From: Octopus sinensis
Taxonomy: Eukaryota
NCBI RefSeq assembly: GCF_006345805.1
Contig: NC_043011.1
Location: forward strand, 50,480,464 to 50,544,463
Direction of reading: 5' to 3'
Length of the DNA: 64,000 nt
Made by a program: the position numbers and the translations under genes. The notes under the pieces were generated by a model. That model did no database searches. It worked only from the letters and a program-made list of their open reading frames with translations, and was not told where the DNA came from. Positions 31,740-63,109 of this stretch are shown piece after piece (the first letter of the stretch is position 1; each line of letters begins with the position of its first letter).

Positions 31740-31776
31740 ATGAAATATTTTATCCTTATTTTCCTTGTCATTTTCC
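31740..31776 (+). CDS. Gene A exon 1, signal peptide MKYFILIFLVIF (phase-1 donor)
   Basis: ATG, basic residue, hydrophobic run, then C|GTAAGT. 32/37 nt identical to 54785-54821, with the donor at the same position. Confidence 0.8.
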
Positions 31777-32022
31777 GTAAGTAGCTACGTGGTAATTATT
31801 TTCCAATTAACATTACTATTTGTGTGCAGAATATAGACGTAAGTCATTTGGTAATATCATTATTCTATCTCCTCGTTCGTTTCTTTCTCAGTCTCTCATT
31901 CATATACACATGCATACATATGCAGACGCACACAAACACACACACACACACATGTATATATGTATATATGTACGTATATATATGTACACACACACACACA
32001 CACACACACGCATATATATATA

Positions 32023-32250
32023 GGCGGCGAGCTGGCAGAAACGTTAGTGCCCCGGGCGAAATGCTTAGCGGTATTTCGTCTGTCGTTTCGTTGTGAGTTC
32101 AAATTCCGCCGAGGTCGACTTTGCCTTTCATCCTTCCGGGATCGATAAATTAAGTACCAGTTACCCACTGGGGTCGATGTAATCGACTTAATCCCTTTGT
32201 CTGTCCTTGTTTGTCCCCTCTATGTTTAGCCCCTTGTGGGTAGTAAAGAA
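32023..32250 (+). mobile_element. SINE family B, full length
   Basis: Same head, central domain and ...GGGTAGTAAAGAAA end as 19396 and 43121. Confidence 0.85.
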
Positions 32251-32278
32251 AAAAAATATATATATATATACATATATA

Positions 32279-32782
32279 CTCTTTTACTCGTTTACTTGTT
32301 TCAGTCATTTGACTGAGGCCATGCAGGAGCACCGTCTTTAGTCGAGCAAATCGACCCCAGGACTTATTCTTTGTAAGCCTAGAATTATTCTATCGGTCTC
32401 TTTTGCCGAACCGCTAAGTTGCGGGGTCGTAAACACACCAACATCTGTTGTCAAGCGATGTTGGGGGGACAAACACAGACACACAAACGTACACCCACCC
32501 ACACATACATATGTATATATATACACACACACGCACACGCACACACATATATATATATATATATATATATATATATATATATATATATATATATATATAT
32601 ATATATATATATATATATATATATATATATGTACATATATACGACGTGCTTCTTTCAGTTTCCGCCTACCGAATCCACTCATAAGGCTTTGGTCGGCCCA
32701 AGGCTACAGTAGAAGACACTTGCCCAAGGTGTCACTCAGTGGGACTGAACCCGGAACCATGTGGTTCCTAAGCAAGCAACTT
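32279..32782 (-). mobile_element. SINE family C with expanded internal (TA)n
   Basis: Sequence identity to the family consensus on both sides of the microsatellite. Confidence 0.85.
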
Positions 32783-33628
32783 ATAGGTTATTATTATTAA
32801 AAAAATTCAAGTCTTCGAGCTGTTTCTGGGATAACTCAAAATATGGGATATCCCGTCATTGGGATCGCAAAAAACTTTAACAGATTCACTTTAAAATTAT
32901 CCTATTCTTCTACACCAAATACAGAATCTATTATTACTTCATCTAAAAAAATTTACAAATTTCAAATTTAATACTACAAATATATATATTTCAAATATCA
33001 AACAATAACAATTAAAGCAATATTGACAAAAAACTTCTTTAAAGATTTCTAGAGAGTCATTTATTCATTTTGCACTTAATTTGTTGGTTAGCTTTCATTT
33101 TTTAAATATTTTTCCAAGTGTAAATAGAAAATACTTTATCTCATAATACAAATTTTAAAGTTCTTTCTTTTGTGTCTTTAAAAAACATTTTTTTTTTAAA
33201 GTTCTATACTCTTTTAGTACGTATATTGCACATGTGTTTAATTTCATTACACAATATCTGCGAATTAAAACTTTTGAATAATGAAATTTGTTCAAAAAAT
33301 AAAATTTAGTGATATGCTAAAAATGAAAACATGAATATTTTAGCTTAATAGAAAGAAATTTTTAATGAAAAATATTATCTTTAAATATTTTTAAAATGCA
33401 ATAAAAAAAACGGAATATAACAAAAGAAAACTGTGCACACACCTTGTCAGCACATTGCTCCGCAGCAATTTTCTAAGCCTTTTTTGTTTTGTTTTTTTGT
33501 TTTTATGGCCTGTATTTTCCCAGGTTTAATTACTGTTTGTTCAATATTTTTCATTCTAGTCCCCTTTTTTTCCAGGCAAAACTTTTATTATTATAGTCAG
33601 TCATATTCACCATTTTGATATATGTATA

Positions 33629-59595: not shown

Positions 59596-59827
59596 AATAA
59601 TAATAATAATAATATAATAATAATAATAATAATAATAATATAATAATAATAATAATAATATATATAATAATAATAATAATAATATAATAATATTAATAAT
59701 ATAATAATAATAAATAATAATATAATATTATTAATAATAATAATAATATAATAATAATAATAACAACAACAACAACAACAACAACAACAACAACAAAAAG
59801 AATAATTATAATAATAATAATAATAAT

Positions 59828-60508
59828 ATGTGGAGAATATGTGCAGAATACGTGGAGATGGACAAGAAACAATAAATCATATTATCTCTAGCTGCCCAGT
59901 CCTGGTAAGAAGGAATATATTCACGACATGACAGAGTTGGAACCTACATACGTTGGAAGCTTATGCCAACATTATGGAATAACAACAGAAAAAAGATGGT
60001 ATAGGCACACACCAGAAAAGGTCACAGAAAACGAGAAAGCAACCATACTCTGGGATATGCCGATACACACAGATAGAGAAATTAAGGCCAACAGACCAGA
60101 TATAGTTGTCAGAGATCATGAGAAAAAAAATGCTTTCTAATTGATGTATCAATACCGGCAGATGACAACGTGTCTCTAAAAGAATGGAGGAGAAACTCTC
60201 AAAATACAAAGACCTGGAAATAGAGGTAACTAGAATGTGGAATCTGAAAACAGAAACAATTCCTATCATAGTAGGTGCATTAGGCATGATAAAAAATATT
60301 CAGACAAATACATAACAAAAACACCAGGACTTACAAACACATATAACATACAAAAAATTGCACTACTAGACACTGCACACATCCTACGCAGAACACTTTC
60401 CATACAATAACCATCAGAGCATCACAACAAATCAAGAACATGCCCAAGTCACACAGAGCTGCGCTCGGTAGTGAAGTGAAAGCACGCTATAAAAATAAAA
60501 CTACTGAA
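59828..60508 (+). mobile_element. R4/Dong 3' fragment inside long (AAT)/(AAC) array
   Basis: WYRHTPEKVTENEKATILWDMPIHTDREIKANRPDIVVRDHE and the standard 3' UTR. Confidence 0.85.
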
Positions 60509-61985
60509 TAATAATAATAATAATAATAATAATATGTAATATAATAATAATAAATAATAATAATAACAATAACAATACACAATAACAATAACAATAAAAT
60601 AATAATAATAATAATAATAATAATAATAATATAATAATAATAACAACAACAACAACAACAACAACAACAACAACAACAACAACAACAACAACAACAACAA
60701 CAAAAACAACAACAACAACAACAACAACAACAACAACAACAACAACAACAACAACAACAACAACAACAACAACAAACAACAACAACAACAACAAACAACA
60801 ACAACACAACAACAACAACAACAACAACACAACCACAACAACAACAACAACAACAACAACAAACAACAACAACAACAACAACAACAACAACAACAACAAC
60901 AACAACAACAAACAACAACAACAACAACAACAACAACAACAACAACAACAACAAACAACACAACAACAACAACAAAACAACAACAACAACAACAACAACA
61001 ACACAACAACAACAACAACACAACAACAACAACAACCAACAACAACAACAACAAACAACACAACAACAACACAACAACAACAACAACAACACAACACAAC
61101 AACAACAACAACAACAACAACAACAACAACAACAACAACAACAACAACAACAACACAACAACAACAACAACAACAACACAACAACAAAACAACAACAACA
61201 ACAACAACAACAAACAACAACAACAACAACAACAACAACAACACAACAACCAACAACAACAACAACAACAACAACAACAACAACAACAAAACAACAACAA
61301 CAACAACAACAACAACAACAACAACAACAACAACAACAATAACAACAATAACAATAATAATAATAATAATAATAATAATAATAATAATAATAATAATAAT
61401 AATAATAATAATAATAATAATAATAATAATAATAATATAATAATAATAATAATAATAATAATAATAATAATAATAATAATAATAATAATAATAATAATAA
61501 TAATAATAATAATAATAATAATAAAAATAATATAATAATAATAATAATAATAATAATAATAATAATAATAATAATAATAATAATAATAATAATAATAATA
61601 ATAATAATAATAATAATAATAATAATAATAATAATAATAATAATACTAATAATAATAATAATAATAATAATAATAATAATAATAATAATAATAATAATAA
61701 TAATAATATAATAATAATAAAATAATAATAATAATAATAATATATAATAATAATAAAATAAGAATAATAATAATAATAATAATCAATAATCTAATAATAA
61801 TAATAATAATAATAATAATAATAATAATAATAATAATAATAATAATAATAATAATAATAATAATAATAATAATAATAATAATAATAATAATAATAATAAT
61901 AATAATAATAATAATAATAATAATAATAATAATAATAATAATAATAATAATAATAATAATAATAATAAATAATAATAATAATAAT
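60509..61985. repeat. About 1.5-kb compound (AAT)n/(AAC)n array; sister array at 59598-59827
   Basis: Direct inspection. Confidence 0.95.
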
Positions 61986-63012
61986 GTAAAATTAATGAAT
62001 CAATTTTAACGAATAATTTTACAAGTAGTTCGGTATGTAAAATGAATCATTATCGGTAAATTTATCAAAACCTAATTATGAGCATAATTATAATTAGGGT
62101 TCTGCAAAATTTGTTTCACCACATAACAAAATGTAGGCTTACAATTATATATATATATATATAAATATATATATATATATATATATATATATATATAATA
62201 TATATATATATATATATATATATATATATATATATACATAGGAGAGAGAGAGAGAAGGGGGAGGAGAAAAGAGAGAGAGAGAGAAACCAATACATAAATA
62301 CATGCCTATCACTGTTTGAGTTGCATAATAGTGGTTTTATCTCTAACTTATATTTTATATATTTATACTGTGAAATATGATTTAATACTAAGTTGAATTT
62401 TTCGCTGTAAGTCTGGAGTTATACTCCCTAATAACATTATGATATATATATATATATATATATATATATACATGCATACATACATACATACATATTTATA
62501 TATGTAGATATAGATAGATTCATACATACATATATGCATATATATGTGTGTGTGCGTGTGAATTCACATACACATACGTATAGTTGTAATTTGAACATAT
62601 GCAATTCATGTGTCTGTGTGTGGGGGTGAGAGTGTGTGTGGGGGTGAGTTTATGTGTGTTTGTGTGTGAGGGGGTGAGAGTGTGTGTTGGGGTGAGTGTA
62701 TGTGTGTTTGTGTGTGTTGTGTGTGTGTGTGGTGTGTGTGTGTGTGGTGTGTGTTTGTGTGTGTTTGTGTGTGTTTATCTCTCATCTATTTTTCTGTATA
62801 TTACTGAGGGATTTTGACGTCCAAATACTCGACCGGAATTATACTGAAATATATTCCTCGCTCCCACATATCTACAAATTCGAACATGAAACAACCATGT
62901 GTATACTCTGTATGATATGAATGCGCAACAGGCAGAAACGACGGTGTTGTTACAAAAATTTAATATCGCAACAATCATTTGAGATTTTTAAAGGAAATTT
63001 CATATCTTTTAG

Positions 63013-63109
63013 GTGTCAGGGCTTATTTTAGAGAGATATGCACTAAAGAGGCAAGACGTTTCTGTCCATCTACCTTTGTACAAGTTACCAGAAGGGATTT
63101 ATTTTGCCG
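63013..63109 (+). CDS. Gene B exon 2, VRAYFREICTKEARRFCPSTFVQVTRRDLFC; remainder of gene beyond the window
   Basis: CATATCTTTTAG|GTGTCAGGGC ... TGCCG|GTATGT. 97 nt, phase 1 to 2, open, with C-x7-C and terminal FC as in gene A. Confidence 0.8.

Follow-up and report, generated by a model that had tools for sequence, protein, structure and literature searches.

A tandem family of small, probably secreted six-cysteine proteins with diversifying domain exons in Octopus sinensis

Gene B and the tandem array

The window analysed here is a stretch of 64,000 nucleotides of the Octopus sinensis genome (contig C15:50480464-50544463 of a 2.72-Gb assembly in 13,516 contigs; 35% G+C). It holds part of a tandem family of small genes, which we call genes B, C and D and pseudogene A, and the predicted products are secreted, cysteine-rich proteins that may be attached to the cell surface by a glycosylphosphatidylinositol (GPI) anchor. 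An earlier account made from the letters of the window (the sequence-only reading) had joined five short exons into one phase-perfect frame for a protein of 110 residues, and all five lie where it put them: in gene B they join in frame into a coding sequence of 333 nt (110 aa), beginning MKYFILIFLVIFRVRA, and every internal exon boundary reads AG...GT in the sequence. The signal peptide, the cysteine spacing, the GGSGNTFG linker and the hydrophobic tail described at the time are each borne out by the translation of gene B, whose cysteines stand at positions 21, 29, 45, 54, 65 and 78, giving a spacing of 7/15/8/10/12. The features of gene B, in window positions, are as follows.

31682..31688, + strand: TATAAAA box, 58 nt 5' of the ATG (sequence read and motif scan)
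31740..31776, + strand: exon 1, 37 nt, ending in phase 1, with the start codon and most of the signal peptide; donor GTAAGT
35933..36032, + strand: exon 2, 100 nt, with the end of the signal peptide and Cys1-Cys3
37432..37531, + strand: exon 3, 100 nt, with Cys4-Cys6
38323..38346, + strand: exon 4, 24 nt, with the GGSGNTFG linker and the candidate GPI attachment (omega) region
38347..38430, + strand: conserved start of intron 4, kept in all paralogues, where read-through gives an alternative tail VSKTFLLPLSIQYM...; in gene B it runs into a probable short interspersed element (SINE)
42187..42258, + strand: exon 5, with the conserved tail GRSQSLFAASVVTLLL... and a TGA stop at 42256-42258
42430..42435, + strand: polyadenylation signal ATTAAA, 172 nt past the stop

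Parts of gene B recur in its neighbours. The 100 nt 5' of exon 1 show 78-79% identity to genes C and D, the exon 4 peptide has the same residues in both of them, and exon 5 with its flanks has 81-86% DNA identity to the tail exons of A, C and D. Exon 2 of gene B has only one occurrence in a genome-wide search. The array, which we refer to below as cluster 1, was traced further with protein and DNA queries of the flanks, covering 40 kb on the upstream side and 60 kb on the downstream side. Its other features are these.

54785..54821, + strand: exon 1 of gene C, 37 nt
63013..63109, + strand: exon 2 of gene C, 97 nt, followed by (GTAT)n
36033-36120 (gene B) and 63110-63140 (gene C): (GTAT)n repeats at the exon-2 donors, present also after exon 2 of gene D (L008) and around 10124 of L018 (Octopus bimaculoides)
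Window-equivalent 65153-65249, 65879-65902 and 67299-67358 (L008): exons 3-5 of gene C, past the window end
Window-equivalent 70342-75820: gene D, the next after gene C, with exon 1 at 70342
24940..25027, + strand: exon-3 relic of pseudogene A, with an in-frame TAA at 24959-24961, Cys5 lost and the donor changed from GT to GC
27186..27245, + strand: exon-5 relic of pseudogene A, IRSQSVFATAVVTLMLAHI, then a stop

Genes C and D encode 104 aa each, keep all six cysteines and have the same intron phases as gene B (1, 2, 0, 0). Gene C is the second gene with identical phases that had been recognized from its first two exons, and its exons 3-5 were recovered beyond the end of the window. The remnants of a third copy that had also been reported do exist, in the form of the two relics of pseudogene A, and lie upstream of the range (31740-63109) to which they had been assigned; exons 1, 2 and 4 of this pseudogene were not found.

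The introns of cluster 1 carry much transposon debris, including a long interspersed element (LINE) endonuclease, a Mos1-type transposase and a tRNA-like SINE. Intron 1 of gene B contains an open reading frame (ORF) fragment on the minus strand (34710-35402; Pfam Exo_endo_phos, E=6e-7) that is probably a LINE remnant. Intron 1 of gene C contains a mariner/Mos1-type transposase remnant on the minus strand (55423-56345; Pfam HTH_48, E=2e-6) and, at about 60450-62050, a trinucleotide-type low-complexity repeat of ~1.6 kb whose six frames all give long runs of N, I, L, Y, V, C, T or Q, with spurious ORFs of up to 431 aa. Assembly gaps of 100 N occur at 9598-9697 in the window and at window-equivalent 109105-109204 outside it. 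An Rfam scan of 24-64 kb returned no RNA genes.

Two clusters in two octopus species

The family is larger than the sequence-only reading saw, with four copies here and about 9-14 in a second cluster. The latter was located by a genome search with P0004, a relative from O. bimaculoides, on the other strand of the same contig, C15, at a distance of 16 Mb from the window. DNA searches with exon 1 plus the promoter and with exon 5 plus its flanks gave matches on contig C15 only, at 3-4 places in cluster 1 and at about 9-14 places over 66.66-66.97 Mb in cluster 2. Gene models for cluster 2 were made from 80 kb of this region (66.69-66.77 Mb, L038-L045), and the remainder of the cluster-2 census consists of search coordinates. 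The 80 kb hold the intact genes Os2_b, Os2_d and Os2_e, the gene Os2_f with no detectable exon 1, the pseudogene Os2_c and one partial copy. Intron phases are identical in the two clusters; the exon sizes are 37/91-97/88/42/60 in cluster 2 and 37/97-100/97-100/24/60-72 in cluster 1, and the linker is rich in Pro, Ser and Thr in the former and of Gly/Ser type in the latter. The exon-2 donor also distinguishes the clusters. In cluster 1 (genes B, C and D, and the O. bimaculoides copy) the (GTAT)n microsatellite that follows exon 2 supplies the donor GT with its first unit, and the splice site therefore lies within a length-variable repeat, unlike in the cluster-2 genes, which have an ordinary GTAAAT.

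Within cluster 2, exons 4-5 of Os2_b and Os2_d are identical and their upstream parts differ, the exon-4 donor being mutated from GT to GC in both. Conversely, exons 1-2 of Os2_d and Os2_e, together with their flanks and introns, are identical and the downstream parts differ, and Os2_d carries an extra copy of exon 2 located 300 nt past the first. Unequal crossing-over between copies of cluster 2 appears to be frequent, and the arrays go on being remodelled by duplication, recombination between copies and gene decay.

Relatives in protein collections are few. A profile built from genes B, C and D (A1) and searched among 5.8 billion protein clusters retrieved a single one, LOC128249797 of O. 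bimaculoides (P0001). An exhaustive search with P0001 of 1.84 billion representatives added LOC128249756 (P0004), which has the complete architecture, and a wider profile (A2) added LOC128249758 (P0006) and nothing more. Two further matches of the representative search, P0002 and P0003, were discarded as spurious, being translated low-complexity repeats. The three loci (P0004/P0005, P0006 and P0001) are automatic RefSeq models of O. bimaculoides named 'uncharacterized protein', and literature searches by locus name and by descriptive terms found no named function and nothing relevant to them. The genes of that species are likewise arranged in two tandem clusters, which lie on a single chromosome with ~8 Mb between them (L018, L019). 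P0004 follows the five-exon plan, with signal peptide, six cysteines in register, linker and a tail of SQS followed by a hydrophobic run; its identity to gene B is 41%, and that of P0001 is 37%. The RefSeq model of P0001 begins at an ATG inside intron 1 and has no signal peptide. The true signal-peptide exon of LOC128249797 lies ~2.1 kb upstream and has the donor CT rather than GT (L018:7841-7879 and 10001-10123). The locus is either decaying or mis-modelled, and the lost donor suggests that it is probably a dead copy.

The genes had been described as hidden, which holds for B, C and D, since they have no counterpart in protein collections; it does not hold for the family as a whole, three relatives of which are in RefSeq as uncharacterized proteins. 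On the sequence comparisons, the family is restricted to the octopus lineage, is new and is claimed by no named family, as had been proposed for a lineage-specific tandem family of small, secreted, disulfide-rich proteins and as the protein, Pfam, PDB and Foldseek searches agree.

That these exons belong to genes can be argued from their conservation and from their distribution. A frame of 110 codons would be free of stops by chance in about 2 of 10,000 cases at the base composition of the window, yet eight intact paralogues from two clusters and two species, with 30-50% protein identity, keep the frame, the six cysteines and two aromatic core positions, together with GT-AG sites, intron phases 1, 2, 0, 0 and a polyadenylation signal 172-190 nt past the stop. 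Chance is excluded on these grounds. All significant matches in DNA and protein searches of the 2.72-Gb genome fall in the two C15 clusters, with matches elsewhere at chance level and none dispersed. Because the copies are confined in this way, the exons do not belong to a transposable element (TE) consensus, which the sequence-only reading had named as the finding that would overturn it; TE origin and chance ORFs were both ruled out as explanations by this distribution. A broader alternative is that the exons are non-functional, as decaying pseudogenes, TE fragments or a chance chain of small ORFs. Dead copies do exist (A, Os2_c and probably LOC128249797 of O. bimaculoides, with its exon-1 donor lost). 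We nevertheless regard this alternative as very improbable, given that eight copies retain frame, cysteines, splice sites and phases and polyadenylation signal at 50-70% protein divergence, that change is slower in the signal and tail exons than in the introns, that the copies occur only in two clusters of one chromosome with no dispersal, and that the family is conserved across two species. The RefSeq isoforms given for two of the O. bimaculoides genes are the sole indirect hint of expression.

The cysteine-rich domain and diversifying selection on its exons

By inspection, a classical signal peptide is spread over exon 1 and the first part of exon 2: all copies begin with MK, followed by 10-11 hydrophobic residues and by small residues at -3/-1 (VRA, VMS, AVS, VMT) before Cys1. 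Exons 2 and 3 together encode a domain of ~55-60 aa with six invariant cysteines, within a precursor of ~105-110 aa. The positions invariant across members are the six cysteines, F43 and F50. Mature domains are mostly cationic, with an isoelectric point (pI) of 8.8-9.6 in 6/9.

The structure of P0004 was predicted with AlphaFold on an alignment (A3) of the three database proteins and exact exon translations from the window and further loci. The model has a mean predicted local distance difference test score (pLDDT) of 76.5, rising to 88-94 over residues 21-73, and places helices at ~17-28, 40-54 (kinked) and 59-73, followed by a disordered linker (74-90) and then a helical tail. The domain is thus predicted with confidence to be a small, compact three-helix bundle, presumably held by three disulfides. 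A single-sequence AlphaFold model of P0001 was set aside (pLDDT 59.5).

No known family or fold matches this domain. Pfam-A hmmscan of gene B and five family members at E<=10 gave only chance matches to the unrelated DUF3086 and YL1_C, and the loose resemblance to DUF19/CPG4-type domains that had been suggested for the cysteine pattern found no Pfam match even at that threshold. Searched with a sequence profile, the PDB gave CHCHD5 as its best hit, with a chance-level E=1.7, and a Foldseek comparison with PDB structures placed the RGMB N-terminal domain first (E=8.2; template modelling scores of 0.27-0.34), with nothing significant. As far as sequence profiles and a predicted structure can tell, fold neighbours of the domain, if any, lie beyond recognition.

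The strongest feature of the family was missed by the sequence-only reading: in the two domain exons, substitutions that change an amino acid are in extreme excess. This excess is clearest in two independent pairs of recent duplicates, in which non-coding DNA provides the background rate of change. Genes C and D differ at 127/3485 aligned non-coding sites (3.6%) and at 2/121 sites of exons 1, 4 and 5, vs 25/194 sites (12.9%) of exons 2 and 3, an excess over non-coding DNA with Fisher p=2e-7. All 22 changed codons are nonsynonymous, and the ratio of nonsynonymous to synonymous change (dN/dS) of the mature domain is ~8.8. In the pair Os2_d/Os2_e, 568 nt around exon 3 contain 5 differences, and exon 3 itself contains them at 17/88 sites, in 12 codons that are all nonsynonymous (p=5e-12; dN/dS 6.3). 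In the two pairs, the divergence of the domain exons exceeds that of their own introns by a factor of 3.5 to 20, and purifying selection acts on the tail exon of every copy. These substitution patterns show strong diversifying selection on what would be the exposed domain, along with conservation of the cysteines, the aromatic core, the signal peptide, the linker and the tail. Change of this kind is what recognition molecules, or molecules in an arms race, display.

Divergent exon islands could also arise as patches left by short-tract gene conversion or recombination between paralogues, rather than by selection on point mutations. The arrays are indeed mosaic, with Os2_b and Os2_d sharing their 3' halves and Os2_d and Os2_e their 5' halves. 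Yet exon 3 of Os2_d and exon 3 of Os2_e are each other's nearest sequence in the whole assembly (81%), and no other copy is closer to genes C and D. Patches from old paralogues should in addition bring many synonymous differences, given a dS of 0.5-1 in old pairs, whereas only ~1.4 of the 42 differences in the two pairs together are synonymous. Because copied patches should carry such differences, we consider gene conversion limited to these exons improbable.

The carboxy-terminal tail, mode of action and known systems

The proteins extend 28-37 residues past Cys6. Small residues come first, as GGSG and then NTFG(G/V)RSQS in cluster 1, and as G and VSS, or G and ASS, on the two sides of the exon 4/5 junction in cluster 2. 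Next come polar residues (RSQS or SSQS), and then a hydrophobic run of ~11 residues that is the protein end in most copies. Exon 5 encodes a conserved tail of 19-23 residues, and 19-30 residues remain after the candidate omega sites. Examples of the hydrophobic run are FAASVVTLLL and VFGAAIVTLL, and the best 10-residue Kyte-Doolittle means are 1.6-2.6; the run is far too short to span a membrane. For GPI anchoring, the residues at the omega and omega+2 positions are small, the C-terminal signal is 20-30 residues long, and the hydrophobic stretch has ~20 residues (PMC7125958). In its small omega and omega+2 residues, its polar spacer and its signal length, the order of the tail fits this rule (PMC7125958). 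Among the readings of the tail, GPI anchoring appears the most likely from its sequence, and we hold it with a confidence that is about evenly balanced.

We therefore favour, with somewhat better than even confidence, the reading that the window carries part of an octopus-restricted tandem family (B, C, D and pseudogene A) of secreted, GPI-anchored, six-cysteine three-helix proteins under diversifying selection. The product would enter the endoplasmic reticulum, shed its signal peptide and form three disulfides. Among the small residues around the exon 4/5 junction, GPI transamidase would then remove the C-terminal tail and attach a GPI anchor in its place, and the variable helical domain would therefore come to lie on the outer face of the membrane, or be shed. 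There, the domain may bind a fast-changing partner, which could be a molecule of a pathogen or symbiont, a ligand from gametes or conspecifics, or some other recognition target.

Several observations weigh against this reading. The hydrophobic run of ~11 residues is about half the ~20 of GPI signals (PMC7125958), and GPI anchoring is unproven because the run is only about 11 residues long. Genes C and D have Asn and Gln inside the run, and gene B has seven additional residues, KHTYKYI, past it. The structure model was built on a shallow alignment of 3 full-length rows plus exon fragments. The dN/dS values are pairwise counts on short sequences, and older pairs are saturated, with a mature-domain dN of 0.5-1.0 and omega (here dN/dS) of 0.4-1.6. 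Searches of large collections yielded no transcript-derived protein of the family, only the three O. bimaculoides genome models.

Some of the same observations would suit products that are soluble secreted effectors (a toxin, an antimicrobial peptide or a water-borne pheromone), with the conserved tail as a clipped propeptide or sorting signal. The family evolves as venom and defence peptide families do, with conserved signal and flanks, a fixed cysteine frame, a hypervariable mature region and exons outpacing introns. The mature domains are mostly cationic, as given above, the hydrophobic run is short for a GPI signal, and a conserved read-through of exon 4 (see below) would substitute the tail entirely. 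On the other hand, no dibasic or other recognizable processing site lies between domain and tail, small residues followed by a hydrophobic run at the very end of the protein make up the classical GPI layout, the tail exon evolves under purifying selection in every copy, and Pfam, PDB sequence and Foldseek searches found no similarity to toxin, antimicrobial or pheromone families. Soluble effectors are thus a possible but rather unlikely interpretation in our view.

Few parts of the whole gene are as well conserved in their DNA as the first ~57 nt of intron 4. Read-through at the exon-4 donor would yield a tail of 19 residues, VSK-(T/I)-FLLPLS-(L/I)-QYMTT-x-SI, whose stop codon keeps its position in most copies across the two clusters and the two species, with indels inside the tail in frame. 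RefSeq isoform X1 of LOC128249758 (P0006) ends by the equivalent read-through. Conservation of intron 4 extends at least 150 nt past the read-through stop, and sequence conservation alone is therefore no proof of coding; the segment may be coding sequence or a regulatory element. By analogy with alternative 3' ends elsewhere, read-through could switch between an anchored and a non-anchored form.

In gene B only, the conserved start of intron 4 is broken by an insertion at about 38407-38490 on the plus strand, which has a tRNA-like head with A-box-like and B-box-like motifs (GGCCCAGTGGTTAGGG ... GGTTTCGATTCCC). It is probably a tRNA-derived SINE; Rfam at its gathering score makes no tRNA call there.

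Returning to the reading we favour, of GPI-anchored proteins under diversifying selection, one could go further and propose a cephalopod-specific system of hypervariable surface recognition (immune, self/non-self or gamete), built on an undescribed three-helix, three-disulfide fold, with its diversity generated in the two domain exons. That diversity could come from an arms race with extreme selection or, as a more speculative option, from a mutational process directed at these exons. Such a system would explain why near-identical duplicates differ almost only there, and by amino-acid changes. Cephalopods have numerous lineage-specific genes with no assigned role, and to our knowledge no system of variable surface-recognition molecules has been described in them. 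We regard this proposal as speculative and unlikely.

Genes B, C and D were passed over by the automatic annotation of this genome, and the practical yield of this work consists of corrected gene models, a family profile and a starting structure model. The family offers ~15-20 small, tractable genes in two arrays, and its clean selection signature marks it out for the study of host-microbe, gamete or chemical recognition in octopus.

Among known systems, the Ly6/uPAR proteins (CD59, SPACA4/Bouncer) are small, GPI-anchored and cysteine-rich, are encoded in gene clusters and show positive selection in the members that interact with pathogens or gametes. The octopus family is like them in size and in its layout of signal peptide, one disulfide-rich domain and a putative GPI signal, and may work likewise. 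However, Ly6/uPAR domains are beta-rich three-finger structures with 8-10 cysteines, whereas the octopus domain is predicted to be all-helical and has six, and no Pfam UPAR_LY6, PDB or Foldseek match places it among them. Accelerated exon evolution is known from conotoxins, snake-venom phospholipases and three-finger toxins. With such venom and defence superfamilies the octopus family shares the conservation of its signal and other non-mature parts, a fixed cysteine frame, a mature region that is hypervariable, exons that diverge more than their introns, and tandem birth-and-death evolution. Their products, in contrast, are soluble and freed by propeptide cleavage, whereas the octopus family has no cleavage motif and a GPI-like tail, and there is no similarity of sequence or fold between them.

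With nematode DUF19/CPG4 proteins, the octopus family has in common only that both are cysteine-rich and possibly helical. CHCH twin-Cx9C proteins (CHCHD5) and the RGM N-terminal domain (RGMB) are, as is predicted for the octopus domain, small helical domains held by disulfides, and the RGMs are also GPI-anchored; these two were the sole hits of the PDB sequence and Foldseek searches, both at chance level. The octopus spacings are Cx7C, Cx8C and Cx7-10C in a protein with a signal peptide, whereas CHCH proteins have twin Cx9C motifs, are mitochondrial and carry no signal peptide, so that cysteine spacing and signal peptide alike set the family apart from them. What is new is this family, together with its fold assignment and very sharp selection signal; the general kind is familiar, because lineage-restricted families of secreted, cysteine-rich proteins are common in animal genomes.

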